Part shown: positions 823 through 42,945 of the stretch, piece by piece | Numbering within the stretch: position 1 is the first letter of the stretch | Layout of the letters: the number at the start of each line of letters is the position of its first letter | NCBI GenBank assembly: GCA_038087875.1 | Contig: CM075991.1 | Span: 13,206,001 to 13,270,000 of the forward strand | From: Malacoraja senta | Lineage: Eukaryota | Direction of reading: 5' to 3' | Length of the DNA: 64,000 nt | Notes under the pieces: generated by a model | What the model saw: only the letters and a program-made list of their open reading frames with translations | The model's database searches: none | Told to the model about the DNA's origin: nothing | Position numbers and translations under genes: made by a program

Positions 823-1027
823 GATGCGAGTTTACCCAAGAGCTCTCCCGAGTTTAAAACAAAATCAAGCTCGTGATATTCTACTAACTCCTACAACCTT
901 CCACGAGTATGTTCACGAGCTCCTACAAGTAAAAAGCAGCAATTTTTTTCATGACGAGTATTTTTCACTCTTGTTGAAAAAACTTCATAAGTAAAAAAAT
1001 ACTCGTGCTCTTGGGTAAACTCGCATC
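823..1027. mobile_element. MITE with perfect 21-bp terminal inverted repeats (second copy 39788-39992)
   Basis: gatgcgagtttacccaagagc at 823 and its reverse complement gctcttgggtaaactcgcatc ending at 1027. No credible coding sequence inside. Confidence 0.75.
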
Positions 1028-3645: not shown

Positions 3646-3981
3646 CGTATTAAATCCTGCTTCATTCTAATGCATTTAAAAAAATATTTCCCTGATAACA
3701 AGGTGGTCAGAACGTTGGGTGACTCTGGGTCAGAGTTTGTCACTGAGGTAGTGTGGGTGAGTCGGACAACTCCAATGATGGGGAACGTATACGACACTGC
3801 ATTGCTGCGCATCCTAACACCAGGTACATTATAGCCATTAAGAGTTAATGGAAGATTTCTGATTGCATTATGCACAGAGACGGACTTTAAGAAAGAAAAT
3901 GCTGGGAGCATAAATCCTGCACCAAAGTGTGAGCTTTAGACACAGCTCTGCATTTGGGTCATTTCAATTCTTAACAGGAGG

Positions 3982-4181
3982 NNNNNNNNNNNNNNNNNNN
4001 NNNNNNNNNNNNNNNNNNNNNNNNNNNNNNNNNNNNNNNNNNNNNNNNNNNNNNNNNNNNNNNNNNNNNNNNNNNNNNNNNNNNNNNNNNNNNNNNNNNN
4101 NNNNNNNNNNNNNNNNNNNNNNNNNNNNNNNNNNNNNNNNNNNNNNNNNNNNNNNNNNNNNNNNNNNNNNNNNNNNNNNNN
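3982..4181. other. Assembly gap (200 N)
   Basis: Run of N. Confidence 1.
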
Positions 4182-4370
4182 TGGAAGTTGAAGCTTTGTG
4201 GGAGTGAGTGTGCACAGAGTTCACGTTGCTTCCTGTGCAATTGGTGCCATGATGATGCTGCTGTGATTCTCTTAATACTTCCAACATCATGGTTTCTTTT
4301 GAATTCTTCCCTGTTAAATCGAAACACGGTGGTTTTTATTTTCAACTGTACTATTCATATTTTGCCTCAG

Positions 4371-4569
4371 GAAACAACTTGAAGAGTGGTTAGCTTCTAA
4401 AGGGAAGACCTACAAACGCCCTCCCATGCCAACCCCTTTGAAGAAAGTTTTCAAATCTGTAAAGAAGAATTTGGAGTGTTCTTTCTTGGAAGCACTGGAA
4501 GAAGAACAGAAGAGCCTGGCAGATCGGGTGCACCACATGTTGAATGACTGCATGAAGCTGCTAGAGAGG
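4371..4569 (+). CDS. CKAP2L: CKAP2-like protein, internal exon (5' part of the gene absent, beyond the gap)
   Basis: tttgcctcag|G..AGG|gtatgg. Translates (R)KQLEEWLASKGKTYKRPPMP...HMLNDCMKLLER, matching the CKAP2L RKQLEEWxxSKGKTYKRPPM motif. Confidence 0.92.
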
Positions 4570-4722
4570 GTATGGACATTTTACCAGGATTGACAGCGAG
4601 ATTAATGCTTCCCAAAAAAATTAATTGTCCCTGCTCCAGGATGAGTGCTGGAAGTGTTGTAGAGTATATTCAAATAGAGGTTTTGTTATGGGAAGCGCAT
4701 CTTGGAATCAATCAATCGATAA

Positions 4723-5520
4723 GAAGGTAGACACAAAATGCTGGAGTAACTCAGTGGGACAGGCAGCATCTCTGGAGAGAGGAATGGGTGACGTTTTGGG
4801 TCGAGACCCTTCTTCAGACTGATGTCAGGGGAGCGGGCAGGACAAAGATAGAATGTAGGCAGAGACAGTAAGACTAATGGGAGAACTGGGAAGGGGATGG
4901 AGAGAGAAAGTAAGGACTATCTGAAGTTAGAGAAGTCAATGTTCATACTGCTGGGGTGTAAGCTACCCAAGCTGTTCCTCCAATTTGCGCTGGGCCTCAC
5001 TCTGACAATGGAGGAGGCCCAGGACAGAAAGGTTTTTGGGAATGGGAGGGGGAGTTGAAGTGCTAGGCCACTGGGAGATCAGTTAGGTTTGCTGAGCCTG
5101 TGCTTGGTCTCCCTTCCACTCCCCCTCCCATTCCCAATCTGACCTTTCTGTCCTGGGCCTCTTCCATTGTCAGAGTGAGGCCCAGTGCAGATTGGAGGAA
5201 CAGCACCTCGTATTTCACTTGGGTATTTTACACCCGCGGTATGAACATTGACTACTATAACTTCAGATAGCCCTTGCTTTCCCCCTCTCCATCCCCTTCC
5301 CAGTTCTCCCACTAGTCTTACTGTCCCGCCTACATTCTATCTTTGTCCTGCCCCCTCCCCTGACATCAGTCTGAAGAAGGGGAGGGGCCAGGCCAGGAAG
5401 AAAAAGACCCAAAACATTGCCCATTCCTTCTCTCTAGAGGTGCTGCCTCACCCGCTGAGTTACTCCAGCATTTTGTGTCTACCTTTGATTTAAACCAGCA
5501 TCTGCAGTTCTTTCTTACAC
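4723..5520. mobile_element. Two Penelope-derived fragments in inverted orientation in a CKAP2L intron
   Basis: 4723-~5095 and ~5110-5520 are degenerate reverse complements of each other. Both resemble the 3' end of the Penelope element at 2675-3060. Confidence 0.75.
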
Positions 5521-5671
5521 AGTCAATCGTTAAGGTAGGTACTAACTGCATGCAGTGGAATTATTTTCTTTCTTTTCCCAAATGGCAATCCTTATGGTAT
5601 TTTCAAATAGCTGCAAAGTAGTTATTGCTTCGTTGTGTTATATTTTTTAAAGTTTACATTGTTACCTTTAG

Positions 5672-5830
5672 GGTTCCTCGCCTGAACAAGTGTCTGAAGC
5701 ATTGCGGAATGTTCCTGGCGGTGAGAAGTTTGCCAAGTACTGGATTTGCCGAGCACATCTGCTAGAATTAACTGGTACGATGGAGGCCATCGTTGCTCTG
5801 TTTGAGCAGGCTGTTCACAGTGGTGCAGAG
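5672..5830 (+). CDS. CKAP2L: CKAP2-like protein exon
   Basis: ctttag|GGT..GAG|gtaact, phase 0/0. GSSPEQVSEALRNVPGGEKFAKYWICRAHLLELTGTMEAIVALFEQAVHSGAE (CKAP2 C-terminal domain). Confidence 0.92.
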
Positions 5831-5949
5831 GTAACTATATTTGTAACAACAAACTAAAATTGCTGATTTAAATGTTTTAAGTTTTGATCTTTACCTAAAC
5901 ATTCCTCTCTGGTGAGTTGCTTTACAATGAGAAACTAACTCTTTCACAG

Positions 5950-6022
5950 CCTGTTGAAGAGCTGCGGTCTGCACTTGTGGAAACCATCATGAGGAATGCA
6001 AACTCTCACACATCCTGTACAG
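5950..6022 (+). CDS. CKAP2L: CKAP2-like protein exon
   Basis: ttcacag|CCT..ACAG|gtaaat. PVEELRSALVETIMRNANSHTSCT; phases fit the flanking exons. Confidence 0.9.
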
Positions 6023-6536
6023 GTAAATCTGCTGGCATTAAAAAATGGAGTTTCCTTTAGATTTGTAAATTTAAAATGGTGAAAAATATATATTTGCATT
6101 TGTGTAACTTCTTTGAGTGCTTTAGAACCAATGTTTTTATGTTGTATTGTCACTTTTCTTGACGGATATATGGTATCCAATTTGTGCTCACACCTAGGTT
6201 CCACAATCAATGTAATAATGGCTAGCTGATTTGCTTAATGTACATTGAGCCATAAATATCAGCCAAGATACCAAAGATGTCGCCCTGGAATCATCTTCAG
6301 CCATCTCCGTGGAGCATTAGTTCAATGTTCCGATAACCGGCATCTTTAGCATCAGTGGAACACTCTTGATTCGAATATTGTGCTCTGATCTTTGGAGGGA
6401 GGGTTGAACCCACAATTTCTGTCCGAGCATATGAATAGCCATCTGTGCAATGGATGACGTTGACATAGAGATGCTGTAGTTATGAATGATCACTGACCAT
6501 TTTTAAATTTGCCCCGTGTTTTTTATATTATGATAG

Positions 6537-6684
6537 AAAAGGAAGATGTTAAAACTGAAGGTTTTGAAGAATCAGCTGTTGCCACGCCTCGTACAACATT
6601 AGTGGAGTCTCTGTTCAGCAAAATAGATGGGCATGGTTCATCCGTGATTAAATACAGAGTGACCGCAACACCCCAAGTGCTCAG
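6537..6684 (+). CDS. CKAP2L: CKAP2-like protein exon
   Basis: tgatag|AA..CTCAG|gtaagg, phase 1/2. KEDVKTEGFEESAVATPRTT...GSSVIKYRVTATPQVL. Confidence 0.88.
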
Positions 6685-7162
6685 GTAAGGTTTTATCATC
6701 AACGCCTTTCCCCCTTCTCCCGCCAAGAAATGATGGCCATTGTACTTGTCTATATTAATCCCTTTAACTCAAATTTTTCCCATAACCCATGCCTTGACAA
6801 ATCGGATGATTCGGATTTTGATAGCTTGATATTTTCTAAGTACTTCAGGTGCCTCTGTTGTGGTTCAATGTTCTTAAACAGATAAAAACACAAATAAAAT
6901 CAGTGATCAAGCAGTACAATCTTTATTTCGCCATACAGAGTCGCTTGTTATTGGAAAAAGGTATATCAACATATTTGTTAGCCTTGTAAGAGCTTCCTGC
7001 TGACTTTGCAATTAATTATGAGAAAAGTAATAGCCTGTCTTTAATTTCAGCTGAATCCATTTTTGTACAGAATAAATCTTTTTAATTCAGGTGGCAACTG
7101 TACAGAATTAAATCAAAGAGGTGACACATTTTCAACATTTCAAAATCGATCTTTCTTTGCAG

Positions 7163-7379
7163 AACAAATGAGCTTCAAAGCAAAATCCGATCTCATGGGA
7201 AGCAAGATCTGAGGTTCCTCACCCCAGTCCGGCGCTCGGTTCGCATTGAGCATGTTTCTGCTTGGCACCCTGAGATGTTGAGAGAGCATGACTACTGTGT
7301 GGCCTCCCTAAATGAACTTTTAGCTGAGGATGAGGCTGAAACATTTGTTTACAGAGAAAACAAGGCTTTGCTGGAATAA
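7163..7379 (+). CDS. CKAP2L: CKAP2-like protein terminal exon
   Basis: tttgcag|A. Reads ...QDLRFLTPVRRSVRIEHVSAWHPEMLREHDYCVASLNELL...YRENKALLE*, with the conserved TPVRRS and PEMLxEHD motifs. Confidence 0.93.
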
Positions 7380-7467
7380 CAGAAATTACACTGATATCCT
7401 TTAAATGCATTTTACATACTATCCACATTAGCTATCAGCTTATTTGTATTGTTTTAAGAATGTATAT

Positions 7468-7473
7468 AATAAA
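7468..7473 (+). terminator. Probable CKAP2L polyadenylation signal
   Basis: AATAAA about 90 nt after the stop, followed by GT/T-rich sequence. Confidence 0.6.
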
Positions 7474-7892
7474 CTTGTTGTTTATTCGGTGCTTGGAACT
7501 GACTTTAAATAACACTCAGACACGGGAGTAAAACTAAGCAGCTTCTTTATTCCAGGAAGCCACCTTGTGTCTCTCCTGCGCATGCGTACCATTGCGCAAG
7601 ACATCACATATGTTAATTCTATTACATACACCACATGCCTCCCCTTTAACTTGGAGGCAGGTAACACCATTTCTATTACATACACAGCAAACTATTGTAT
7701 TCAGAAACTTCAAAAGCATAAAAATAGTATATATTTAATTGTGCTAACGTCTCCTTGTCAACTACCTTCTTTCTTCACAAACACCAATATTCTGCTGCTT
7801 GTTTTTACTTTGCTGTATCTCAAGGAATGAGGAAAGCAACACAACAAGGAATAACTAAGTTTGCCAATTATGAAGAACTTTGCTATTACAAA

Positions 7893-7962
7893 TCTCAGTG
7901 TGGAGTACAGAGGCAAATAAATAAATGATGGGTCTTTGTCTCAAACATTATGGAGGGCACTG
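7893..7962. mobile_element. Partial Tc1 TIR
   Basis: ...caaacattatggagggcactgta, the same terminus as at 53355. Confidence 0.8.
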
Positions 7963-8219
7963 TAGTACATTGGCAGAAAAACATTTCAGTTAATTCTGTC
8001 CTCTTTTCCAAGAATGGAAAATGTCAATCTAAAGTATTGCTTTTAAGTTAAATGCTGGGTTTAGGAAAAGAGGACATGCAATTAAACAGATTTTTTTTTA
8101 AAGTAAATATAATGCAGATAGCGCTTTATTTCACACAGTGATTAAACCTTGAATGAGGCAGAAAGTAGTTTGACCAACAGTTATATTCGGGGAGATTACT
8201 GGCCATCTTCCATCGTGGT

Positions 8220-8408
8220 TTAATCTATTTTTTGAATTTTAAAATATTTGGCTTCCATGTTATTTGTGTCATTGTCAACCGTCACCTTTTTATTTGCGTG
8301 GTGGATAAACCAACCTGCTGCCAGACATGACTCAAAATATATTCGCTCATCGGACTGCACCACCTTTTTAAAAAGGAAAGCCTCATTGGTCGGCTTTCCT
8401 TCGTTGGG
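8220..8408 (-). CDS. IL-1 family cytokine, terminal exon
   Basis: tttctttattccag|CCC..GAT TAA. PNEGKPTNEAFLFKKVVQSDERIYFESCLAAGWFIHHANKKVTVDNDTNNMEAKYFKIQKID* carries the IL-1 family FLF..FES.xx.GWFI pattern. Confidence 0.85.
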   Translation of the reverse strand, partial: PNEGKPTNEAFLFKKVVQSDERIYFESCLAAGWFIHHANKKVTVDNDTNNMEAKYFKIQKID

Positions 8409-8743
8409 CTGGAATAAAGAAAAACAAATTATGCACTTACTGTATTTGTAAAGCAAGCAGGCACACAATAGAAATACTGTAGCGGATCCCTTCCTGTCAC
8501 AGGTGGTTCTGCTGCTTTGAGGATCAAAAGCATTCGGTTTTTGGCTCTAGACATATGGAGAGAACGTACAAACTCCATACAGACAGCATCCGCCTGAACC
8601 TGATTCTCTGCCGCGGAAAAGCAGCAACCCTACCATTGTGCCGCCCTAGGTCTTGGATGGTGCAGAGAAAGTGAGGGTTGGGGAAGATATGGTCTAATTC
8701 GCACTAGACTGTTCAATAAGTGTACAACCAAAGAATTATTTAC

Positions 8744-8868
8744 CTGTAGTATGAGCTTTCGGCTGTTTCCCTGACCGATGCAGACCGATACCGATGAGTA
8801 TTTCCCGGAATCTTTGCTAAAATGCAGAGATACAATGTCATCTCCATGTGGGGTGATTTTTACCTTGG
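8744..8868 (-). CDS. IL-1 family cytokine, penultimate exon
   Basis: tgatttccag|CC..CTACAG|gtaaat, 125 nt, phase 1/0. (A)KVKITPHGDDIVSLHFSKDSGKYSSVSVCIGQGNSRKLILQ joins the terminal exon in frame. Confidence 0.82.
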
Positions 8869-8979
8869 CTGGAAATCAGATAAGAAAGAAGTGAGACACA
8901 GCCATTCATTTTCTGTTGCAATTGCTTGTTGGCAGCAGGGTTTGCACCTAATTGCTGCCCAGAAATACTTGCTACGGGT

Positions 8980-9205
8980 ACAATAGCAGTAGAGTTGCTG
9001 CCTCACGGCGCCAGAGACCTGGGTTCGATCTTGATCAAAGGTCCTGTCTGCACAGAATTTGTACATTCTCCCCGTGACTGAGTGGGTTTTCTCCAGGTGC
9101 TCCGGTTTCCACTCACACACCAAACACCTACAGATTTGTAGTTAATTGGCTTCTGTGTAATAGTGCTAGTGAACGGGGTGATTGCTAGTGCACACTGTAT
9201 CTCTA
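8980..9205 (+). mobile_element. tRNA-derived V-SINE (HE1-like); similar copies near 36500-36710(-), 47640-47890, 54175-54355, 60180-60435(-) and 61190-61460
   Basis: tRNA-like head (gtagagttgctgcctcac..gggttcgatc) plus the tttgtacattctccccgtgac..gggttttctcc.ggtgctccggtttcc core. Confidence 0.75.
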
Positions 9206-10374
9206 AAATCAAAAGTTAACTTTGCCCAGTTCAACACAGAATGAGAAATTACAGATTTTGATGCTAGTTTCTCATGGTTGCTGCATTCCAGTTTTTCTAA
9301 TGTAACTTCTGACACAGGAGACATGAACAATCCCACAGTCATCTAATGACTGCAACATTAATCACCACCAGTGTTGATTTAACCCATTGGTGTTGATCAC
9401 GATACTATATGATAGAACTTTATTTATCCAAGGAGGAAAATTGATCTGCCGTCATAAAAACACAAAATACATGAAACAGGAATTAAAGTGACAAGTGGAA
9501 AGGATTGGGGGATGTGCAAAGATTTGGGGGGGGGGGGAGTCGGTCTACCCCATGACAGAAGAGGGAGGAGTTCTACAGTTTGATAGCCACAGAGAAGGAT
9601 GTCCTGTAGCGTTCTGGAACCAGTTTGTTACTGAAAGTGCTCCTCAGGTTGATGGAGGGGGTGAGCTGTATTGTCCAGGATACTCCACAGTTTGAGGAGC
9701 ATCCTCTCCTCCAAGACCACCTCCCATGAGTCCAACTCCGCCCCCAGGATGGAGCCAGCCTTTCTGATGAGTTATTAATCTTATTGGCGTCAGCAGCTTT
9801 TGCCCTGCTGCCCCAGCACACGGCAGCCACTTTCTCACCAGTATGTTGTAATGGCTTATTTCTATGCTGGAGCCAATTCTGACCCCACTGCTCTTTAGAA
9901 TCATAGAACCCTTCTGGGTAGAATGGGGCCATTCTGCTCATGGTGCCTATGCCAGCTTTTTCCAACCAGTTTAGAGACTGCAGGTTTGCAAGCTGGTGCC
10001 ACTAGTGAGAACACAACAGCTCAAGAGTAGAACCGAGTTCAGGACAGGCCCAATGACCCAAATGTCAAGTGGAATGAGCCGATGTAAAACCTATGGAGAC
10101 TGAAGAGATATTCCTTCAATTGACCACCTACTCTCAGTTGGAATAATATTTAGTTAGCAAGTGCTAGAGACCGCCTGTATCCATTGAGAAAGCCTGGGGA
10201 AGAGCTGCAAATTTGACACTACAGGTAAAACTCATTAGTTTAATCAGGTACGCTAATTTATTTCAGATATTTTTGTTAAGAGTAGATCAGTTACCAGGTT
10301 CTGTGCACAGATTTCTTTGCCAGCTGGCACGTAGGTTTTCTTGAGATGATTGGTGCCAACAAACTAGGGCTTAC

Positions 10375-10501
10375 CATTGCGGTTAGAATTCATGGACTTC
10401 AGTATCACTTCGTTCGAAGATTCGTATATCCTCACGATTCTGTTATCTGAAGTGTAAATGTAATAGCTACGTTCATTGTCCATATTTCCGATGGTTTCTA
10501 C
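10375..10501 (-). CDS. IL-1 family cytokine, first exon of the beta-trefoil region
   Basis: tttttttcacccag|GTA..AATG|gtaagc. VETIGNMDNERSYYIYTSDNRIVRIYESSNEVILKSMNSNRN ends in phase 1, matching the next exon. An alternative acceptor 4 nt inside (exon start 10497) is possible. Confidence 0.78.
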
Positions 10502-10787
10502 CTGGGTGAAAAAAAAACATTTTAGGGTCATAGCCGAGAAGATGAAGTGACCATTTTATTTGCATTCACATAGTAATTCAAAGAAATCTAAAGCTGTAAT
10601 TAAACTACAATTGTAATGCTTATAATACTTATGACTGTAATGCTTATATTCCCTATATTTTAAATTCAAGTTACATAGTCTCCACTGTAATACAGTGCTG
10701 CCCCAACTACGCTGAAGTCACGAGCTGTGTAATACGTGCGTTTGACTGTCCAAAGGCTGAGACCAAGCCACTGAAGTGCATATTGGT

Positions 10788-13118
10788 CTGGTGTACACCA
10801 ACATTAAAGATGCATATAGAGCAGCCCCCCTCCCCCATATCGGCAACTCTGACCACCTAGCGGTTATGCTCACACCTGCATACAGACCCAGGGTGAAACA
10901 GGACAGGCCAACGGTCAAAGAAGTCAGAACATGGCCACAGGGAGCTACTGCAGCACTACAAGACTGTTTTGAAACCACACAGTGGGCTGTTTTCAGAGAG
11001 GCAGCAACAGATGACAGTAGCATCAACCTCCAAGAATACAGAATCCGTCATCGGATACATCAATAAATGCACTGATGATGTAACGGTGGTAAAAACCGTC
11101 AGGAGGCGTGCCAATCAGAAACCTTGGCTAACTGGGGAAGTGTGTTCCCTACTGAGAATCCGGAATGCTGCATTCAAATCTGGGGACAACGCAGCATACA
11201 AACTGGCAAGGAGTAACCTATCCCGGGGGATCAGGGAAGCGAAGAGGCTGTATGGACAAAAACTTAATAGCCACTTCGCAAATGACAAAGACACACGTCG
11301 CTTGTGGCAGGGATTTCATACCATCACTGACTACAAGCCCCCACCCGCTGCGGATATGCCAAAACGACCCCTCTCTACCAGATGAACTGAACGAGTTCTA
11401 CGCACGGTTTGAGGTTGAAAACACCACCCAGACACGTGCACTACTGCCATCTCCCAGTGACCAGTCGCTCAGGCTGTCCGCAGCCGGAGTTAAAAAGGCC
11501 TTTGCCAGCATCAACCCACGCAAAGCTGCAGGGCCGGACAACATTCCTGGATGCGTTTTAAGAGACTGCGCCGAGCAACTGAAAGATGTCTTCACAGACA
11601 TTTTTAACATCTCACTCAGCCAGGCAGTAGTGCCCAACTGTCTTAAGAGTGCCACCATCGTCCCTGTCCCGAAGAAACCAAACCCAGCCTGCCATAATGA
11701 CTTTCGACCAGTGGCTCTAACACCCATAGTAATGAAGTGTTTTGAGCGACTGGTTATGCAGCATATCAAAAATAGTCTACCTGCCGACCTAGACCCACTG
11801 CAGTTCGCCTACAGAGCCAACCGATCCACAGAGGACGCAGTCTCAACAACACTGAACCTCGTACTGTCACACCTTGATCGGAAAAATACTTATGCCAGGA
11901 TCCTCTTCATAGACTTCAGCTCTGCTTTTAATACAATCATTCCGCAGCAGCTGGTGGAGAAGTTGGAGCTATTGGGGGTTGATGCTGGCACATGTAACTG
12001 GGTCCTGAACTTTCTATTGCAACGGCAGCAGACAGTCAGGGTGGGCAGTAGGACATCAAAAACCATAGCCGTGAGCACTGGCTCGCCCCAAGGCTGTGTC
12101 CTAAGCCCCCTACTGTTTAGTCTGCTAACACACGACTGTACTGCTAGACTCAACAACAACTTCATCAACAAGTTCGCTGATGACACAACAGTGGTGGGTC
12201 TCATCAGTGACAATGATGAGTCGGCGTACAGGATGGAGGTGGAGCTGCTCACAGGATGGTGCAAATCCCACAACCTCATTCTCAACGTGGGAAAGACTAA
12301 GGAGATGGTGGTTGACTTCAGGATGGCGGGAAAACAACACCATACACCTCTGCACATCGATGGAGCTGATGTGGAAAGGGTCAACAGCGTGAAGTTCCTA
12401 GGACTCCACCTGTCAGATGACCTGACGTCCACGACCAACACCACAGCACTGGTCAAGAGAGCCCAGCAGCGACTACACCCTCTCCGAAGACTACGTAAAG
12501 CAGGTCTCTCCACTACACAACCACAAACTTTTTATAGGGGGACAATCGAGAGCACATTAACCTACGGCATCACTTCCTGGTTCGGGAGCTGCAAGGCGTA
12601 CGAACGGCACCAACTAGACAGGATTGTGAAGACTGCCAGCAGGATTATTGGTTCTCCACTCCCTTTCCTGCTGGACATATACAGGAAGAGATGTATCAGC
12701 AGAGCCATCTCCATCATCAAAGACCCCTACCACCCATCGCATCACATATTCTCCATCCTGCCATCTGGGAAGAGGTACAGGAGCATTAGGTGCAAAACCA
12801 GCAGGATGCTCCTCAGCTTCTTCCCGCAGGTTATAAGACTGATAAACGGACTTTGCCCCCTGCCAAAGTATCGTGCACCAACCACCAACCTGGACACACT
12901 GCAGCAGAGCCACTGTCGTGCCGCTGCCGATCGGAACGCCTGTTGATGTTTAGTAGAGAGTAGAGTGTTCATTTGTTCATGATATATGTATTTTTTACTT
13001 CTATTTATTTTTTACTGCACACTGAAATGGACACTGGTTGAGGAACGTTTTTTTGTTTCCTCTGGGTATGTGAATACTCAGGAAATGACAATAAAGATAT
13101 ACAATACAATACAATACA
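10788..13118 (+). mobile_element. Rex1/Babar-clade LINE, 5'-truncated, in an intron of the IL-1 family gene
   Basis: RT ORF 11165-12946 ([33 protein letters not shown]). The endonuclease tail (SDH) is frameshifted. (TACAA)n tail; TSD atattggt at 10780-10787 and 13119-13126. Confidence 0.9.
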
Positions 13119-13770
13119 ATATTGGTACGGCTGTAATTAGCTCCGGAGCAGCAGCGATGTTATGAAACTTTTCAAAGAGCAGAGAAGGGAGAGGTGATTC
13201 CAGTGCTAAGGATGGTGCCAATGGTGGAACAGTTAAGAACGGAGGAAGACTGCGATGTGTAAGGACGATGGGCTGCAGGAGATGCTGCGGCAGGGTGGGT
13301 CTGATCATGTGCAGGATCAAGTTAGATTGGATAGGGAGCCAGTTTGGGTAATACTAATAGAAAGTGATATTATATATGTTCCATCAATGGGAGCTAGCCA
13401 GGAGAGAATTAGAGTAGCCAGGAGAGAATTAGAGTAGCCAGGTTGAAAGCTAGATGGTATGAATCTCCCCAACTTTTACAGATGTTTAAGGAGATTCAGC
13501 ATCTCACCACTCCTTAGGCTCTTGGACAACCCTACCTTAGCAAACATCCGTCGTGGACTTTGCGCTATAACGCAAGATTAAAGCCACAGCAAGTAAGAGT
13601 TTAATTGTTCTGATCCCAGAGCAAATAACAAACACTTGATTCTTTATACTCTTGAACGATGAGCTCAGCGGGACTATGAGTGAAATAATCACCATTTTCC
13701 GAGCTGCAAGCGGGGAGGTGTTTTTTTCAGGAAATGTTAGCAAAGTAGCGAGGGTCTCATTTAAACTCAC

Positions 13771-13815
13771 ATCCTCCACTTCAGCCTCTTTATCCACACA
13801 GGTGCTGACCGGAGT
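13771..13815 (-). CDS. Candidate pro-domain exon of the IL-1 family gene
   Basis: cccttcttcag|ACT..GAGGAT|gtgagt reads TPVSTCVDKEAEVED, and phase 0 joins VETIG. Alternative acceptor gives a start at 13804. Upstream coding exons are unresolved. Confidence 0.45.
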
Positions 13816-14395
13816 CTGAAGAAGGGTCTCCACCTGAAACGTCACCCATTCATTCCCTCCAGAGATGCTGCCTGTCCCGCTGAGTTACGCCAGCATTTTT
13901 GCCTATCTTCGGTCCTGACCACTCCTCCCTGCAAAAGCTCCCGAGTTCGGCCACTCTCCCAACCCTCGGACACTCGCCCCTCCCCCAGTTCCGACCGGAC
14001 ACCCACGCACTTCCCCATTCCGTCGTGTCAGTGAAAGCGAGCGGACAGGACAAAGATCGCCAATTCTCAGATCAGGAATCATGTTTCAGTCTGAAGATGA
14101 GCCCGACCCGAAAAGTCACCCATCCACGTTCTCCAGAGTCGCTGCCTGACCCCTCCAACTGTGTCGTTATTTTAATCATGCCTCAGGTCGTGGACCCGAG
14201 GACAGGTGCCGGGGGTGGAGCGCCTACTGTTTCTCCTTGTGCAAGCGCTACCTCGGTCCTGGCTGGTGACATCTTGCATCTCCTTTCCCTGACAGTATTA
14301 TAGGGTTACCGGTTACGGTTAGGTACTATAGCGCCGTTTCACTTAATTCCCAAACATCTTAAGGACAATTATAACCAATACTAGAGATCTCTCTT

Positions 14396-16250
14396 CTTCT
14401 TCTTCTTGTAGGATTCCGGCAGTGTAGACGCTGCTAAGCGTATTACTGCCCTCCACAGGTCAAAGTTTGAACTAAATTCTTACATACAGTCCTGTAACTT
14501 GCAGGAATTGAAGAACAGCCCTGGATATCAGTTGATGTTTCTCATTGTGTCCAAACAAAGATAAAACAGAAAAAGCCTCAACTCCAAGTCCTGTCAGTCT
14601 AACAAACAATACTTTTCTTTCTACCCTATACTTTTTACATTCTAGGAAAACATGCTTAACTGTCTCATTACTCCCACATTCACACAAGCCAGAAACATGT
14701 TTCCCTACAATGCACAAATAGTAATTTAACCCAGTGTCCCAACCTCAATCTACACAGTTTAACTGAGTCCCTACGGGACAGAGATGTACAGAAACATATT
14801 TTCCTAACTTCAGATTGTATAGAAAAGTAGTGTCTACCCCTGACTTCCATTTCCCATCCTCTCTGCCATTCTTTTGTTAAGCCCTCTTTAATTATTTCTC
14901 TCAGTTCCACTCTCCCCAATGATACATGGATATCTATTTCTCTTCTTAAACTCTCCTTTGCTATGAGGTCCACCTGCTCATTCCCTCACCCCAGCATGCC
15001 CGGGAACCCAGCAAAAAGTGATGTTACACGCAAACCCAATTCTAGAAAACACACTCAAGATTTCATTTAGAATGTCAGGACGAGCTTTAGATTTCCCTAC
15101 TCTTAATGTTTCAAGAGCAGCTGCAGAATCAGAACAGATAATGACTTCTCTAAAACTGGCTTCCTCAATCCACCAGAGAGCCCATTGAATTGCCATTAAT
15201 TCAGTCGTGAGAACAGAACTTCCATCAGAAATGCGCCGGCCAATCTTCAACCCAAGCTGCTCCACATACACTCCAAACCCAGCTCTCCCACTAACTGGAT
15301 CTTTAGATCCATCTGTAAAAACAATCAAAGTACTCTCACTGATTGAATTAAGATATTCCACTATTCTTGGAGTCACCTCGCGCTTATCTTTTTCCTGAAG
15401 AAAAGCAAGCTCAATAAACAGTTCAGGAAGAACCCAATAGGGCACAGGTAGCCTTATTGTATGCTCTATAATACCCCCTTGTTCCAAACCCAGCTTCCTA
15501 GCCCACTGATTTATAATGACAAAAAATGTGTTATATTTGTTACCATCATCAACCTCTTGCAACAAACACCTTGCTGGGAAGGTATCATTACACCCACAAA
15601 GTTTAGCCCAGTAATGTAACCCTAGCTTAATGCGCCTTAACCATAAGGGCATTTCTCCCATTTCAACAATCAGGGCAGGGACTGGGGAAGTCCTGAAGGC
15701 TCCACAGCAAAGCCTCAAAGCTTTTGCCTGCAACACATCTAGCCTAGCCAGAACAGTTTTAGACGCAGACCCATACACAAAACACCCATAGTCAACAGAA
15801 GATCTGATCATGGCCTGATAAATTAGCAGCATTGTCTCCCTGTTGGCCCCCCACTCACACCCAACCAGACTTCTCATAACATTCAGAACTTTTTCACACT
15901 TCAACACAATTTTACCTACATGCCCAGCCCAAGTCATACGCTCTTCAAACCAAACACCCAAAAACTTAAAAACCTTTACCTTCTCCAATAGAGACCCATA
16001 CATATACAGCCCTAACTTAGATAACTTTCTTTTAAAACCAAATACCATATATTTAGTCTTAGAGGCAGAGATTTTAAAGCCCCATGTGTCCCCCCATTCC
16101 TCTACAGACACTAACACTCTTTGAATCTGTTTTAAAACAAACTCTACATTACAACCTCTTTTCCAGATGGCCCCGTCATCTGCAAACAAAGACAGACCAA
16201 ATCCTCTCTCTAATTTACAAAATATGTCATTTATCATGATATTAAATAAA
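14396..16250 (-). mobile_element. Nimb/I-group LINE fragment with RT end, RNase H and CCHC
   Basis: LFADD, VFTDGSKD, IICSDS, WVPGHAGV, RLRLGH, CECG..ETVKH motifs. (AAG)n tail; TSD actagagatctctct at 14380 and 16251. Confidence 0.88.
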
Positions 16251-18412
16251 ACTAGAGATCTCTCTTTGAATTAAACCATTTAAAAAGCCGTGTTCTTGTA
16301 CTAATCGCCACCCAATGACTGTCGCAGATAAATAGCAGCGAGTAGATGTGGCGCTGATTCTCTCTCAGCATCACCTGGTTGAATAGCCTTTCGGGCCAAG
16401 AGAACAAAACGCCTCGGGCCAGTGCCAAATGAGGAACCCTACTGCAGCAGGAAAATCTTTCACCACACACGCTTCCAGCCTGGTCTATTTTTGTTTTCGC
16501 TTCACAGCATCTGCAAAGTGTTCCTTTTGGACTATTGTGGAGGTTTTTAATCTCATAACCACCCACCCCCCCCCCCCCCCAAACTAATTGTTTGCATCAT
16601 CAGTGGTGCAGAAGTGGGAATGGCACTTCACATTCCTTGCTGTTAATATTACTAATGATCTGTCATGGAGCAACCATATTGATGCAACAGCTATGAACGC
16701 ACACCAATTTATCTATTTTCTGGAGAGAATGAAGACATTTGGCATGTTTCCAGTGTATAGTATATCTGATCTGTTGGGATGGCATGTAAAACAAAGCTTT
16801 TCACTGTACCTCGAAACGTGACAATAATAAACCTAAAGCTGATCCAACCTGATGCAAGAAAAGCCATGTGCCAGACAACATCCTACTGTCCCACTGAAAA
16901 AGTGTGCTCCTCAGCTAGCTGAGCCTCCAAACAAACCATTTCAGTACAGTTGGGAAATTGCCCTGGAATATCCTATTCTCTAAAAGCAGGAAAAATCCAA
17001 TCCACCTAATTACTATTCAGTCAGGCTATTGTCAATCATCATCAAAGTGACGAAAGCTGCAGTGTTATCAAGTGAAACTCACCAATAACTTATTCCCCAT
17101 CACCCAATTTGGGTTCAACTCCAGACATCATCACAAACGTTGTCCAACCAAAGACTAAAGGGCTGAATTGCAGAGGTAAGGTGAGAACGACTGCCCTTTA
17201 ATTCAAGGCTTGCTGGAGTTCGGAGTCGGTCACCAACCAGGTCAGCTCCCGATGTTACCATCCACAGGGCCCACGCCCGAAGTCTCACGTGTGTGTGTGA
17301 GCGGTCACCAAGAAATTGTGTCTCCCCGTGTTTTGATAGCGATTTCCGCCATTGCTCTACAAAACACAATCTGCATACTCTGGCAGCAGCTCTCAAATCC
17401 ACAATCTCAGCCATCAAGAGAGCTAATGACAATAGGTGTCTGCTATTTCTTTCTTGGTTCCACACCATCCTGACCCGGAAGTAGATTGCTTTTCCTTCAT
17501 TGCATCTAAGACTTGGAACTCTCTGCCAAACAGCCCTTTGAGGAACCTTCACCTGAAGGACTGCATGAAGATGGCCTTTACAGAGCAGTTAAGGGATAGG
17601 TAAGAAAACTCCTCACCCTGTCATCTCTGCAAACAACCCCCTCACCCACTCCCTCTGTGCACCCAGTTTGAGAGATCTACTCAGCTACTTATATTGTACT
17701 GCTGTATGAACAACTTTTAACCCTGAACAATCTTTGGAACCCTCTCATTCACAACTGAACGGTACTTCCATCAGCTAGAGTGCATTCCTGACCTCCCATC
17801 TTCCTGATCGGAGACCTAAATGTCGTCCCCTTTATCCTTTATCTGTACACCCTGCATTGCTTGTTTTGTCTTGTTTTCGTGGCTTGTTTTCTTTGACTGC
17901 ATAGCACACAAACTAAATGTTTTCACTGTACTTCAGTGTACATGACAATAATAAACTAAACTAAAGATCCTAGAATCCATTCTCAGATGATAAGTAGGTA
18001 AATAACAGCAAATATTCTTGCAATTGGAGCTAATATAAATAAATTCATTTCTTTTTTGCTAAATGAGTAGCAAATTCATCCAGTATATCTAACCCTTTGC
18101 TCTATATATTGTACTTGAGTTTGACTTGATTGCATTTACTTTTGAGTTCTCTGATCTGTTTAGATAGCATGCAATATGTACCTATCGGCACATTGACAAT
18201 AAACCTAATCCTAAACCAACATCAACAATCAAGAAGAAAAGTGCATTAATAATTTAATCTTACGTTCTAATCTTACGAACGATGATAAACAGATATTGCA
18301 AGGTCAAACCCCAAATTAAAATATATAGATGGAGAACTGTCCCCAGAAGTATGGATCAATAACATTATCCTAGTTTAGTGCAGCATTCCGCTTTGTACAA
18401 AGACATACTCAC

Positions 18413-18553
18413 TTAGCTTTCGAGGGTTTATTGAGCTTCGCCTCACTGATGCTCACCAGCTAATGCCTGGTACGTTCCTGGTTTCTCCCTCCTTTATATA
18501 GAAATAAAGGTGAGGCTTTCAACTACCAGTTGTCTGACTTCCTGTTGTGTAAT
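18413..18553 (-). promoter_or_regulatory. Putative promoter and non-coding exon 1 of the IL-1 family gene, proximal copy
   Basis: C/EBP-type TTGTGTAAT (18545-18553) abuts ETS/PU.1 CAGGAAGT (18537-18544). TATATAAA at 18493-18500. A gtgagt donor at 18407-18412 would close a ~55-nt exon with no ATG. Confidence 0.6.
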
Positions 18554-18665
18554 AATCAGATTTCATGAAAGTGATATGGCACCATATCAGGCATAACATA
18601 AGGTTCATAAGCATTTAACACATAGTTGTGTGAAACCAATGTTGTGCAATGTCAATGGCAAGTCT

Positions 18666-20120
18666 TTTTTTAATGTTTTTATTTTTTATTTTATTTTTTA
18701 GAAGTAAGTACAATAATGTGTTACCAAAGTACCTAATACTTATTGACATATTACATTTCATATACAACTTCTTATTTTTAATTTAATAATAAAGCAAAAA
18801 TAAGAAATGAAAGATTACAAAAGGAAAGATTGAGATGAAGTGTTGCGTGAGATAGCAAAATAGCCCTAGAAAAAAAATGAGGAGAAAAAAAGAAGAGAAT
18901 AAAGAAAAAAGAAACAAAAGAGAAGAGGAAAGGAGATTGAAAGCGATAAGTCTATTTCATAATCCTGTTTCTGAACCATTATATTTCTATGATTGTGTTG
19001 CACCATATGCTTGTAGAAAGTCGATAAAGGGAGACCATATCAATAAGGTCTACCTTACCTACTAGGAGTCGTATTTCTTCAAGATATGCCGTTTCTGACA
19101 TATTTGAAATCCACATTTTCAGTGTTGGTGTTGGCGAATCTTTCCAAAATTTAAGTATGAGTTTTTTTGCCATTATTAAACTGTAATTAAGTAAGGATTT
19201 TTGATACGTATTTAGCTTATTCCCGTCTTCCAGTGATCCAAAGATAATCATTTCTGTATTCGATTCCAGTCTTCTATTAATTAAATTTGTAAAAATTTCA
19301 TTCCAGAATTTATGAAGTTTTATACAGGAGACAAAAGAGTGTTATAGTGGCATTCTCAGCTAAGCATTTATCACATATTGGTGAGATATTTGGATAAAAT
19401 TTATACAATCTAGCTTTCGAGTAATATAGTCTATGTAAAATTTTAAGTTGGATTAAATTATGTTTTACATTAATCGAACATTTATGTATATATATCAGGT
19501 ATTTTTCCCATGCTTCTTTCGCAATTTTTATCTGTAATTCTTGTTCCCAATCTACTATAATTGCTTCTGTCGATGGAGGTTCTATATTTTAAATGATATT
19601 ATATGTATGATATTAAATTGCTTGAATCTGCTTTAATATTCATCGCTTCATCTAGTGAATCTAAAGTTATATATTGATATCCTTGTATGTGTTTTTTCAA
19701 ATAATCTCTAATTTGAAGGTATTTAAAGTATTGATTATTTTTCAAGTTGTATTTTAATTGTAGTTGTTGAAATTATTTAAAAAAATCCCATTTCATACAA
19801 ATCTCCAAAGCTTTTAATTCCTAATCTTTCCCAAAAGGTATACGCTTCATCAATAAGAGATGGCTTAAATGAGGGGTTATTTACTATTGGAGTTAAAAGC
19901 GATAAATTTCTTACTTTCAAAGTTAGTTTTATTTGTTTCCAAATTCGAATTGTGATGTGAATAATTGGGTTCTTCTTATATATTGTATTGTTTAATTTTA
20001 TTGGGGAGAAGAGGATCGCTCCTATATTAAAAGGAGAACAATCCTCTTTCTCCATTCTTATCCATTCTACCTGTTGGGCAGAGCTGTCCCACCAATTAAT
20101 TATGTTCTTAATATGTACTG
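18666..20120 (-). mobile_element. L1/Tx1-clade LINE, 5'-truncated and degenerate
   Basis: A-rich tail at ~18666-18700. ORF2 C-terminal remnants (NPIIHITIRIWKQI, QLKILHRLYYS, CDKC, AKKLILKFWK). Confidence 0.82.
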
Positions 20121-20349
20121 CCTATCGGCACATTGACAATAAACCTAATCCTAAACCATCAACAAACAAGAAGAAAAGTGCATTAATAATTTAATCTTAC
20201 GTTCTAATCTTACGAACGATGATAAACAGATATTGCAAGGTCAAACCCAAAATTAAAATATATAGATGGAGAACTGTCCCCAGAAGTATGGATCAATAAC
20301 ATTATCCTAGTTTAGTGCAGCATTCCGCTTTGTACAAAGACATACTCAC

Positions 20350-20490
20350 TTAGTTTTCGAGGGTTTATTGAGCTTCGCCTCACTGATGCTCACCAGCTAA
20401 TGCCTGGTACGTTCCTGGTTTCTCCCTCCTTTATATAGAAATAAAGGTGAGGCTTTCAACTACCAGTTGTCTGACTTCCTGTTGTGTAAT
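20350..20490 (-). promoter_or_regulatory. Putative promoter and non-coding exon 1, distal duplicate copy
   Basis: Near-identical to 18413-18553: donor 20344-20349, TATA 20430-20437, ETS 20474-20481, C/EBP 20482-20490. Confidence 0.6.
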
Positions 20491-21859
20491 AATCAGATTT
20501 CATGAAAGTGATATGGCACCTTATCAGACATAACATTAGGTTCATAAGCATTTAACACATAGTTGTGTGAAACCAATGTCAAGTCAAGTCTATTCTCATT
20601 TCCTTCTGAATATCCTGATCCAAGAAAAACAAAAATTGATTCATTTGTTAATCTATGTGAAATCTTTAGAGACTACGACCCGCACTTTGGCATTCGTGCC
20701 GGATGACTTAACTTGGGTTTTTATGTTAATACCTTGTTAATAAAGTGATATCTCAAATGTAGCCTTGTGTAAAAAAAATCACAAAACATTGTGAATGAGA
20801 TGTCAATATACAAAATGTTAATTGTAACATTAAAACAGAATATCTTTATTTGTTCTGTTGTGTGGTTAGCAATGGTGTACTTTTAACAATTCCATTTTAT
20901 GGCACTAATTTTCCCGAATGTGATTTCACTCTTGCCATCGGGTAGAAGGTACAGGAGTCTGAAAGATGTGAGCTCCAGGTTCAGGAACAGCTTCTTCCCA
21001 ACAACCATCTGGCTATTGAACACTACAAACACCAACTAAACTTCAAACTATGAACTGTATTAGTTGTATGAGGGATTTGGGCTTCGGTTGTGTTTTGAAC
21101 TATAGTGGGGGTTTTCATTTCTTGAACTTTTTTGTTTGCTTATTTTGTTATCTCTTCAGTACAGTGTTTGCAAAAGTATGGTGCTGCAAGCAAGAATGTT
21201 ATTGTTCTTTCGGTACATATGAAAATTAATCACTTAACTTCACTACTTTGAAAGGCTCACTGAGAAATTTGACAGTTAATAATAAATGAAGAATGGAATT
21301 AGTAATTGGCAAATGAGAAGTTCCACGTTTGATTAATTAGATCCTTCACAAGGCTGAAAGTGCCCAGGCCTGGTGGGGTACTTGATCTGACCGTACTCCT
21401 AAAACACATGCGCAACAACCGTCTGAAGGTTTTGCAGACATCTTCAGTCTCTCATTACTGAGGTTCCCTCCTGCCTTAAAAGGACTTCAATAATACCGGT
21501 GCCCAAGACAAGTATGGTGACATGTCTCAATGATCACTGACCAGTGACACTGATGTCTGTGGATGAAGTGCTTTGACACGTTGGTTATGACACATCATCT
21601 CCGGCCTTAGTAAGGGCTGGGCCCACTACTATTTCTCTACTGTGAAATTGGATCAACAATATTGATTACAATATTGTTTGCAATGGATGAAATACATTTG
21701 GAGGCTGGAGGCATAGATTTAAGACAAAATATGATGTATACTTGTTGGTACATGAAACCGTGTTGTTGAGATCAGACTATTTGACTGAACTGATTTCACA
21801 CTTGACTGGAGAGAGACAGTGGGTAACAAATAACACATCTAATTTGCGTATTGTTTCCG

Positions 21860-24474: not shown

Positions 24475-25353
24475 ATGGCGGAGGGCGACAGCGGGAGCGA
24501 GCGAGGCGGCGGTGGTGGAGGCGGCGGCGGCGGGGGAGGAGGAGGCGGCGGCGGGGGAGGCGGCCTCTTGCTGCAGCAACAGCAGCAGGAGACTCAGGAG
24601 CTGGCCTCCAAGCGGGTGGACATCCAGAACAAGCGCTTCTACCTGGACGTGAAGCAGAACGCCAAGGGCCGCTTCATCAAGATCGCCGAGGTGGGCGCGG
24701 GAGGCAACAAGAGCCGGCTCACGCTCTCCATGGCGGTGGCGGCCGAGTTCCGCGACTACCTGGGCGACTTCATCGAGCACTACGCGCAGCTCGGCCCGTC
24801 GGACACGGACTCGGCCGCCGGCCTGGGCTCAGACGAGCCGCGGCGAGCGCTCAAGAGCGAGTTCCTGGTGAGGGAGAACCGCAAGTACTACATGGACCTG
24901 AAGGAGAACCAGCGCGGCCGCTTCCTGCGCATCCGCCAGACCTTAAATCGAGGCCCCGGCTTAGGGGGGACGCAAGGCCAGACCATCGCCCTGCCGGCGC
25001 AAGGCCTGATCGAGTTCAGGGACGCGCTGGCCAAGCTGATCGACGACTACGGCGTGGACGACGAGCCGTGCGGCCAGGCCGAGCTGCCCGAGGGCACGTC
25101 CATCACTGTGGACAGCAAGCGCTTCTTCTTCGATGTGGGCTCCAACAAGTACGGCGTGTTCATGCGGGTGAGCGAGGTGAAGCCGTCGTACAGAAACTCC
25201 ATCACCATCCCGTACAAAGCCTGGTCCAAGTTTGGCAGCGCCTTCAGTAAGTACGCCGAGGAGATGAAGGAGATCCAGGACAAGCATCGGGACAAGATGC
25301 TCTTCGAGAGGCGAGCCGACGAATCGGATGGGGAAGATGTGGACGACGATTGA
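24475..25353 (+). CDS. PURB: Transcriptional regulator Pur-beta, intronless, 292 aa
   Basis: Three PUR repeats. PURB-type residues: [35 protein letters not shown] and the C-terminal [11 protein letters not shown]. 20-Gly tract. ATG in aagATGg context. Confidence 0.95.
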
Positions 25354-42700: not shown

Positions 42701-42945
42701 TTGTCACTGAGGTAGTGTGGGTGAGTCGGACAACTCCAATGATGGGGAACGTATACGACACTGCATTGCTGCGCATCCTAACACCAGGTACATTATAGCC
42801 ATTAAGAGTTAATGGAAGATTTCTGATTGCATTATGCACAGAGACGGACTTTAAGAAAGAAAATGCTGGGAGCATAAATCCTGCACCAAAGTGTGAGCTT
42901 TAGACACAGCTCTGCATTTGGGTCATTTCAATTCTTAACAGGAGG
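38966..42945 (+). repeat. Near-identical copy of window bases 1-3981
   Basis: Offset 38965 (38964 after a 1-bp indel). About four differences were seen by eye. Confidence 0.97.
41639..42609 (-). mobile_element. Penelope-like element (copy of 2675-3645)
   Basis: ORF 41848-42588 with the GIY-YIG domain. Confidence 0.9.

Follow-up and report, generated by a model that had tools for sequence, protein, structure and literature searches.

Which gene occupies the slot between CKAP2L and PURB in skates? The original prediction was made from the letters of the window (the whole stretch of 64,000 nucleotides analysed here, from contig CM075991.1 of Malacoraja senta). It placed in this slot a hidden and highly divergent IL-1-family gene, whose three exons join in frame into about 146 amino acids. 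The three exons are:

10375..10501, minus strand: exon A, with 18 nt of 5' UTR and then 109 coding nt (36 codons and 1 nt) that open with the ATG at 10483-10481, followed by a phase 1 intron
8744..8868, minus strand: exon B, 125 nt, encoding the hypervariable middle of the protein and followed by a phase 0 intron
8220..8408, minus strand: last exon as far as it is coding, with 62 codons, the stop codon TAA (8222-8220) and the FES-C-x4-GWFI motif

At these exons the acceptors are polypyrimidine-AG and the donors are GTAAG or GTAAA. With sizes of 127 nt (109 coding), 125 nt and 189 nt, they join in frame into 441 nt, or 146 codons plus TAA, and the introns computed from the coding exons have phase 1 and then phase 0, as predicted. 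The last exon is the sole coding exon within an ORF of 60 aa or more (8220..8468, 82 aa), which had also been stated; exon A lies within a 55-aa ORF.

RNA contigs of related skate species fell on exactly the three predicted coding exons. In X3 record 15 (depth 67.7 in one RNA run), the joint 10375|8868 was seen directly, with GT..AG ends on the minus strand. A second joint in this record connected 8744 with the last exon; the initial 18 bases of that exon were too diverged to align. In these contigs the exons are linked precisely where predicted. Adjacent pieces of X1 record 1 covered all three exons, with nothing unique on the introns, and three Logan transcripts (L002-L004) had an exon structure identical to that of the window gene.

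The locus of Rhinoraja longicauda is collinear with that of the window and holds an orthologue of 140 aa with 68% identity (XP_078285085.1 / XP_078285086.1, LOC144610339). XP_078285085.1 has the same three coding exons, of 109, 119 and 195 nt, and is convergent with the CKAP2_C gene. Another orthologue, P0003, also of 140 aa, came from Logan transcripts. A search of 5.8 billion sequences gave two protein clusters only, both from skates, and the gene is confined to skates in current databases. It had been proposed as a possible chondrichthyan IL-1 paralogue that might bear on the origin of IL-1alpha/IL-33-type ligands, and as possibly undescribed. The latter holds for its name and family, as LOC144610339 is an automatic gene model ("uncharacterized protein") with no name, no family and no Pfam match on record. 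However, the gene is not wholly undescribed, because NCBI already models the Rhinoraja longicauda orthologue, the sole public record found.

The non-coding parts of the mRNA, with two candidate copies of one 5' exon, are:

18413..18542, minus strand: non-coding 5' exon, proximal copy; L003 positions 235-365 align at 92% and run straight into exon A
20350..20479, minus strand: second copy of the 5' exon and core promoter; L003 aligns at 93%
13771..13912, minus strand: alternative, repeat-derived non-coding 5' exon; L002 positions 321-463 and L004 positions 6-62 align, followed by exon A
7530..8219, minus strand: 3' UTR, about 690 nt long; the L002 alignment extends as far as 7529

The proximal 5' exon has a TATATAA box (18500-18494), and its donor, GTGAGT, begins at 18412. 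C/EBP-like and ETS consensus matches accompany the TATA box. The second 5' exon is carried by a 470-bp duplication, the copies of which (20110-20579 vs 18173-18642) are 97.5% identical and stand on either side of an L1-like insertion; in Rhinoraja the 5' exon region is in single copy. The 13771..13912 stretch matches many repeat copies within the window. In the 3' UTR there is an ATTTATTTA element near 7926, and AATAAA at 7551-7546 is the poly(A) signal; L002 terminates just past it.

The two kinds of 5' exon were found across three transcript contigs, all with an in-frame stop ahead of the ATG. The TAA that ends the proximal 5' exon is in frame with the ORF, and in all isoforms a stop lies directly upstream of VETIGN or within it. 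Since every isoform has this stop, the ORF begins at 10483-10481, where the start codon has A at -3 and G at +4, and encodes 140 aa. The predicted exons, splice sites and frame thus hold, whereas the length of 146 aa does not, as the first six codons (VETIGN) are 5' UTR. Gene structure, transcription and ORF limits are established for the skate gene by these data. We know of no IL-1 trefoil as short as 140 aa.

Because this ORF has no upstream coding exons, the protein has no prodomain. No Pfam match to IL1_propep was found in the ORF, and by reading of the sequence the N-terminus is hydrophilic, with no signal peptide. The absence of the prodomain was not seen in the original prediction. Only a few residues of the ORF precede strand 1, which is the architecture of the prodomain-less IL-1 ligands and does not imply orthology. 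With neither pro-piece nor signal peptide, the protein would be "mature" from synthesis onwards, as are IL-36Ra, intracellular IL-1Ra and IL-38.

The neighbours of the gene are:

4187..7475, plus strand: CKAP2L 3' exons, convergent with the gene; CKAP2_C Pfam match at 5690-5854, E 1e-9
24475..25353, plus strand: PURB, single coding exon; PurA Pfam match, E 2.7e-104

These matches confirm both flanking genes. The CKAP2L stretch and the CKAP2_C gene at the Rhinoraja locus (L001) are collinear, and the CKAP2_C exons of the window lie about 50 bp past the mRNA 3' end and about 750 bp past the stop codon. PURB, which is 92% identical in nucleotides to a Heptranchias PURB-like gene, is head-to-head with the promoter of the gene and lies upstream, 4-6 kb from the 5' exon. 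CKAP2L, PURB and H2AFV are all found at the type II IL-1beta locus of teleosts (PMC7144542), and IL-1beta is "tethered" by CKAP2L across vertebrates (PMC4090809; PMC5861070). The skate gene thus has the position that IL-1beta takes in ray-finned fishes, and neither the window nor Rhinoraja has any other IL-1-like gene in the interval from CKAP2L to PURB. The orientation differs from that in human. In the skate the 3' ends of CKAP2L and the gene face each other; the human IL1A/IL1B side is instead turned towards the CKAP2L 5' end.

Among 24,736 Pfam models, IL1 (PF00340) was the top family for the last exon of the window gene and for P0001 and P0003. The E-values were 0.018 for the last exon and 0.047 and 0.011 for the two orthologues. 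The matches extend over profile positions 63-98 only, where the FES-C-x4-GWFI motif falls, and score 13.8-15.8 bits, below the gathering cut-off of 25. The profile check proposed for the gene thus agreed in rank and fell short in score. If the family predicted by synteny is tested alone, these E-values would equal p of about 4e-7 to 2e-6. A profile search built from the orthologues found no IL-1 chain among PDB sequences.

In the ESM-Atlas, the nearest feature neighbours of both orthologues were IL-18 clusters (0.93-0.94, 185-187 of 256 features), followed by IL-33 (0.90) and IL-1 (0.87), which bears out the IL-33/IL-18-like look noted by eye. Other beta-trefoils scored lower, with lectin and inhibitor trefoils also among the neighbours, at 0.87-0.89. 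Atlas "recognition" values were 2220-2252, slightly below the level attained by 91% of known-family proteins. The language-model neighbours of the window's last exon alone were beta-trefoil families only.

Two AlphaFold2 models were all-beta with 11 strands and were unreliable (pLDDT 37 and 35, pTM below 0.3). When the unreliable model 1 (pLDDT 37) was submitted to Foldseek, the best 22 PDB and best 30 Swiss-Prot matches were all IL-1 family. The leaders were IL-1Ra, IL-1beta and IL-36Ra only, and query residues 1-140 covered exactly the mature domain (IL-1beta 121-267, IL-36Ra 3-155). With model 2 (pLDDT 35), IL-1Ra was again first in PDB. In the wide search of model 2 against 2.3 million AFDB clusters, no IL-1 match was among the top 30, and F-box, VWD and unnamed matches were returned. 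As all TM-scores were about 0.25, the IL-1 matches rest on local structure letters and residues, not on fold. The structural check thus placed the IL-1 family first for model 1, but at pLDDT 35-37 it did not confirm the beta-trefoil fold, which we infer. Together, Pfam, Atlas neighbours and Foldseek make the IL-1 family the best-supported assignment of this very divergent protein, as originally predicted, and membership is probable, not proven.

We consider it probable that this is a functional four-exon skate gene for a leaderless, bare IL-1-family trefoil core, derived from the IL-1 gene of the locus by prodomain loss. It has a single non-coding 5' exon, for which there are alternatives, followed by three coding exons, and lies in the conserved CKAP2L-PURB slot; its 140-residue leaderless product would be the beta-trefoil core and nothing more. 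In its origin, the prodomain exons of the locus gene were most likely lost, leaving a start codon inside the equivalent of the first trefoil exon.

The gene could instead be the skate IL-1beta orthologue, that is, the fish il1b gene, extremely diverged and with its pro-piece lost, which we think possible but unlikely. Like fish IL-1beta and IL1B, the gene encodes a leaderless protein beside CKAP2L and PURB, where it is the sole IL-1-like gene at the teleost type II il1b position in both skates, and Pfam IL1 is matched, below threshold, by the region of its F-E-S...W-[FY]-I motif. The IL1B trefoil is encoded by three terminal exons, with phases 1 and 0 for the last two introns, and the skate gene agrees with this, and the human counterpart of exon B is 131 nt, compared with 125 nt here. 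Lumpfish IL-1beta2 is reportedly a truncated IL-1beta in which only the three C-terminal exons are conserved (PMC7144542). On the other hand, canonical cartilaginous-fish IL-1beta has been described as a pro-protein of the normal kind, within reach of ordinary searches, whereas the skate protein is under the Pfam threshold, lacks IL1_propep and has IL-18, not IL-1, as its nearest feature neighbours. IL-1beta also has about 250-280 aa and prodomain exons, and the N-terminal pro-piece of its precursors (about 100 aa), whose removal gives activity, is absent from the skate ORF. A canonical IL1B might lie elsewhere in the skate genome, for example beyond CKAP2L, which is the tetrapod arrangement. 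If the gene were this orthologue, skates would lack a canonical IL-1beta at the CKAP2L-PURB locus, and perhaps any.

Maturation of IL-36Ra is the removal of Met1 only (PMC4090809). IL-36Ra, intracellular IL-1Ra and IL-38 share with the skate protein a start a few residues before the first strand, and IL-1Ra and IL-36Ra are its best Foldseek matches, at just 13-22% identity and with unreliable models. As judged by eye, IL-36Ra and IL-1Ra presumably share its GWF motif and the Asp that it has at residue 13. However, the genes of these ligands are known from tetrapods only. Like IL-18, the skate protein has no Pro before the G-[WY]-F motif, and IL-18 clusters are nearest in feature space, the only property that favours IL-18. 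The skate gene is at CKAP2L-PURB and not at the conserved IL18 locus, and it lacks the short, caspase-cleaved IL-18 pro-piece. IL-37, which is regarded as mammalian, shows that the IL-1 cluster can harbour an IL-18-like ligand. nIL-1F / IL-1anc of fishes is also a divergent non-tetrapod IL-1 ligand found in cartilaginous fishes; it differs in having an N-terminal PDZ domain, about 350 aa, seven coding exons and another syntenic region. 

It is distinctly unlikely that the gene is no recent skate oddity but the survivor of an ancient lineage of its own, made up of "born-mature" IL-1 ligands (IL-18/IL-37- or IL-1Ra/IL-36Ra-like), which held the CKAP2L-PURB slot in the jawed-vertebrate ancestor. 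If it were, IL-1 modulators with no prodomain would be older than tetrapods, and in other cartilaginous fishes there would be orthologues so diverged that sequence searches miss them.

A lineage-specific small beta-rich protein outside the IL-1 family, such as a lectin-like or inhibitor-like trefoil or an orphan, would make the IL-1 likeness and the location coincidental, and we find this very improbable. Every IL-1 signal is below its formal threshold, and the F-box, VWD and unnamed Foldseek matches and the lectin and inhibitor neighbours in the Atlas would suit such a protein. However, independent weak signals converge on one family, the one that exactly this position would predict, and the gene has the intron phases that a member should have. 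The protein also has 153-187 features in common with IL-1-family clusters, compared with about 100-116 for other trefoils.

Between the window and Rhinoraja, 16.3% of coding sites differ, compared with 12.7% in introns and flanks; in the aligned 3' UTR piece the value is 5.9% (introns 12.7%). The introns have 15 indels, of which 10 are not multiples of three, whereas the coding sequence has two 6-nt gaps only. About 4.6 frameshifts and 2.7 stops are expected under neutrality, and none has arisen (P of about 7e-4 for an intact ORF). Changes cluster in residues 52-90. In the most variable stretch 27 of 38 columns differ, and invariant blocks of up to 11 residues are found elsewhere (permutation p = 5e-5). 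Pairwise dN/dS is 1.4-2.7 in exon B and 0.8-1.3 overall, a value near 1 that alone would equally fit relaxed constraint. Coding divergence faster than that of introns, with no frameshift or stop, fits diversifying selection rather than decay. The skate gene evolves fast and preserves its ORF. A decaying relic, in which a pseudogenised copy of IL-1 is still transcribed and its frame is open by chance, is hardly credible: the overall dN/dS, the very weak family similarity and the restriction to skates would suit a relic, but the ORF has 140 aa in three species, none of the roughly seven disabling events expected from intron indel and substitution rates is present, substitutions are strongly clustered beside long invariant blocks, coding changes outpace introns, which is impossible under neutral decay, and splice sites, start context and poly(A) signal are kept in a gene with a contig depth of 67.7 in one RNA run.

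As a bare trefoil core produced by prodomain loss, the protein would be released non-classically or upon cell damage. Its predicted target is a member of the IL-1 receptor family, to which it may bind. We lean slightly towards action as an antagonist or modulator rather than an agonist. The central segment (residues 52-90, approximately) would be under diversifying selection, as expected of a surface that contacts a receptor or decoy.

The minus-strand gene between CKAP2L and PURB has three coding exons with pyrimidine-rich AG acceptors and GTAAG/GTAAA donors. Joined, they form 441 nt in a single frame, with introns of phase 1 and then phase 0. An ORF list of default length catches only the last of the three, as originally noted. 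The other features of the gene were located by mapping three Logan transcript contigs from a related skate (L002-L004) onto the window.

Features of the gene
20479-20350, minus strand, second copy of the non-coding first exon
~18542-18413, minus strand, non-coding first exon
13912-13771, minus strand, alternative repeat-derived 5' exon
10501-10375, minus strand, coding-gene exon A
8868-8744, minus strand, coding-gene exon B
8408-8220, minus strand, last coding-gene exon
3' UTR of ~690 nt, minus strand, ending near 7530, just past an AATAAA at 7551

Contigs of three runs from related organisms, whose RNA type is the tool's guess, were aligned to 8000-10700. All three exons and the 3' UTR were covered, with no unique coverage of the introns. 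One 759-nt contig (depth 67.7) carries the joint 10375|8868 (GT..AG, minus strand) and a second joint from 8744 to the last exon, the first 18 bases of which are too diverged for alignment. An 866-nt contig aligns to all three exons as adjoining pieces. A DNA-like run from the organism of the window covered exons and introns equally and had none of those joints. Since the related-organism contigs cover the exons and carry splice joints, the exon pattern is not due to chance, and the splice sites and these contigs together confirm the three spliced exons of the original prediction.

The predicted product of 146 aa starting at "VETIGN" had to be replaced. Every isoform has an in-frame stop directly upstream of, or within, "VETIGN", so the start codon is the ATG at 10483 (A at -3, G at +4). 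The product has 140 residues, the same length as both orthologues described below. There are no upstream coding exons and therefore no prodomain; the N-terminus is hydrophilic and there is therefore no signal peptide.

Upstream of the first exon lies a TATATAA box and, ~45 bp further upstream, a C/EBP-like plus ETS consensus (ATTACACAACAGGAAGT); all of these elements are consensus matches only. The core promoter, first exon and start of intron 1 are doubled in the window (18173-18642 and 20110-20579; 473 aligned bp, 97.5% identical), with ~1.47 kb of AT-rich L1-like sequence between the copies. In Rhinoraja longicauda there is a single copy. At this length, the repeat greatly exceeds a normal LINE target-site duplication. 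The fragment at 13771-13912 belongs to a repeat family with many copies in the window; in L002 and L004 it is used as an alternative non-coding 5' exon. The first 234 nt of L003 are GC-rich, match nothing in the window or in the loci of Rhinoraja and sharks, and join at window position 18542 just after CAG, upstream of the TATA box. This stretch could be an additional exon further upstream, perhaps served by a CpG-island promoter near PURB, or it could be a chimera produced in assembly.

At the other end of the gene, 5.9% of sites in a piece of the 3' UTR (8022-8180) differ from Rhinoraja, compared with 12.7% in neighbouring introns, and a ATTTATTTA element lies nearby at ~7926. The two hint at post-transcriptional control of the kind found in many cytokine mRNAs.

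The translated last exon has one true relative among 1.84 billion representative proteins searched with phmmer, with 79% identity over the matched part. This protein, P0001, is XP_078285085.1/XP_078285086.1 of Rhinoraja longicauda, a 140-aa "uncharacterized protein LOC144610339" for which no Pfam domain is recorded. When 5.8 billion proteins were searched by word index, the sole addition was P0003, likewise of 140 aa and encoded on L002-L004, making two proteins in all. Identity with the window protein is 76% for P0003 and 68% for P0001. Literature searches found no description of the gene. It had been proposed as undescribed; what is new is its recognition as a probable family member, and an unnamed automatic model of it already exists as LOC144610339.

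Pairwise dN/dS was 0.8-1.3 for the coding sequence as a whole and reached 1.4-2.7 in exon B. Between the window and Rhinoraja, 16.3% of coding sites differ versus 12.7% in introns and flanks, so the coding sequence evolves faster than neutral DNA. A dN/dS near 1 could fit a decaying pseudogene, a reading rejected by tests of ORF maintenance and clustering. In the introns, 147 substitutions are accompanied by 15 indels, of which 10 have lengths not divisible by three. The coding sequence shows 68 substitutions, only two gaps, both of 6 nt, and no stops, where ~4.6 frameshifts and 2.7 stops were expected (P ~7e-4 for an intact ORF). Amino-acid changes are clustered: in the most variable stretch (~residues 52-90), 27 of 38 columns differ (p = 5e-5), and blocks with as many as 11 invariant residues lie next to it. 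This pattern is typical of a maintained protein whose surface is diversifying, as is common in immune ligands.

IL1 (PF00340) was the best Pfam family for the last exon of the window (E 0.018), for P0001 (0.047) and for P0003 (0.011). In each case the match fell at profile positions 63-98, the F-E-S...G-W-F-I region, with scores of 14-16 bits, under the 25-bit cut-off. We infer single-test p values of ~4e-7 to 2e-6 (E-values divided by 24,736 models), IL1 being the family that synteny predicts in advance. When language-model features were compared, IL-18 clusters were nearest to both orthologues (0.93-0.94, 185-187 shared features), followed by IL-33 (0.90), IL-1 (0.87) and then lectin/inhibitor trefoils with ~100-116 shared features. 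The neighbours of the last exon alone were all beta-trefoil families (AbfB, fascin, ricin-type, FRG1/FGF).

Two AlphaFold2 predictions were made on 5-row alignments, with P0003 first and then P0001 first. Both were poor (pLDDT 37 and 35), because the orthologues are too few and too similar; all Foldseek TM-scores were ~0.25, and the matches obtained with such models are weak hints only. For the first model, the best 22 PDB matches were all IL-1 family chains (best E 6.7e-4), the best 30 Swiss-Prot matches were all IL-1Ra, IL-1beta, IL-36Ra or IL-36gamma, and the 140 residues covered exactly the mature domain in the alignments. The second model gave a weaker and mixed PDB list, and no IL-1 family among its best 30 matches in 2.3 million AFDB clusters. 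A search of PDB sequences with the orthologue profile returned no IL-1 chain, only a nanobody at E 0.47.

IL-1-family membership is the best explanation. The top Pfam family and the IL-18, IL-33 and IL-1 feature neighbours support the original assignment, while the Pfam scores lie under the cut-off and the AlphaFold2 models are poor; we regard the product as very probably, but not demonstrably, a family member.

The predicted CKAP2L-PURB neighbourhood was borne out by Pfam matches on both sides of the gene.

Neighbouring genes
5690-5854, plus strand, CKAP2_C match
24475-25353, plus strand, PURB

In Rhinoraja, a relative of the skate from which the window comes, a CKAP2_C-domain gene lies 3.3 kb downstream of the orthologue in convergent orientation, and collinearity with the window extends from the promoter through the CKAP2L exons. 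Teleost type II il1b groups with CKAP2L, PURB and H2AFV (PMC7144542), and IL-1beta is accompanied by CKAP2L across vertebrates (PMC4090809; PMC5861070). By position, the gene is in the fish IL-1beta slot. A family HMM run on six-frame translations of the window and of the Rhinoraja, Heptranchias and Callorhinchus loci found only the gene itself, and neither the window nor the Rhinoraja locus holds a second IL-1-like gene. No IL1-domain gene or related exon was found within 10 kb of the Pur genes of Scyliorhinus (catshark), Chiloscyllium (bamboo shark), Heptranchias (sevengill) and Callorhinchus (elephant shark), which says little given the larger genomes, in which distances may be greater, and the chance that these genes are PURA.

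In architecture, the product differs from every IL-1beta; its resemblance is to the IL-1 ligands that lack a prodomain. By eye, it seems to share Asp at position 13 and the GWF motif with IL-36Ra and IL-1Ra. In feature space it is closest to IL-18, and IL-37 is a mammalian precedent for an IL-18-like ligand within the IL-1 cluster. For IL-36Ra, removing Met1 is all that is needed (PMC4090809). Identity with nIL-1F/IL-1anc was rejected, as that ligand has a PDZ domain and a different locus (PMC7144542). Remodelling of this type does happen, since a truncated lumpfish IL-1beta2 retaining just the three C-terminal exons has been described (PMC7144542). If the gene is the IL-1beta orthologue, skates would have remodelled a central inflammatory cytokine so that proteolytic activation is no longer needed, with direct bearing on the evolution of inflammasome-dependent maturation.

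Family members that lack a pro-piece (IL-1Ra, IL-36Ra, IL-38) are considered to have been added in tetrapods or mammals. To our knowledge, the only IL-1 ligands of fishes are IL-1beta, IL-18 and nIL-1F/IL-1anc, the last of which carries a PDZ domain. If the assignment is true, a minimal IL-1-like gene that is transcribed and under positive selection occupies the ancestral IL-1beta slot of skates, and the ligands of a basal jawed vertebrate would include a fourth kind. Structural work would gain a compact natural "core trefoil", and fast-evolving cytokines of this type would be seen to escape automatic annotation and Pfam.

Positions 1-3981 of the window recur at 38966-42945 with 99.9% identity, and the copy at 1-3981 ends exactly at a 200-N gap (3982-4181) inside the CKAP2L region. 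Either this is a segmental duplication of very recent origin or a contig was misplaced or duplicated in the assembly; upstream CKAP2L exons assigned to 1-3981 would need checking. The exact PURB protein of the window is not on record in databases. Its coding sequence is 92% nucleotide-identical between this skate (24577-25288) and the sevengill shark Heptranchias (10013-10718 of its locus, L005), far above anything else in the locus.

Intron 1 (~8 kb) is packed with LINE reverse-transcriptase remnants. Long reverse-transcriptase ORFs occur at 11165-12946 (plus, 593 aa), 14978-16237 (minus, 419 aa), 44140-46749 (minus, 869 aa) and 58057-59577 (plus, 506 aa). On checking, RVT_1 domains were found in the first two, and RNase H also in the second. 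These ORFs represent several LINE-type elements, two of them within intron 1, and some may have been recently active.
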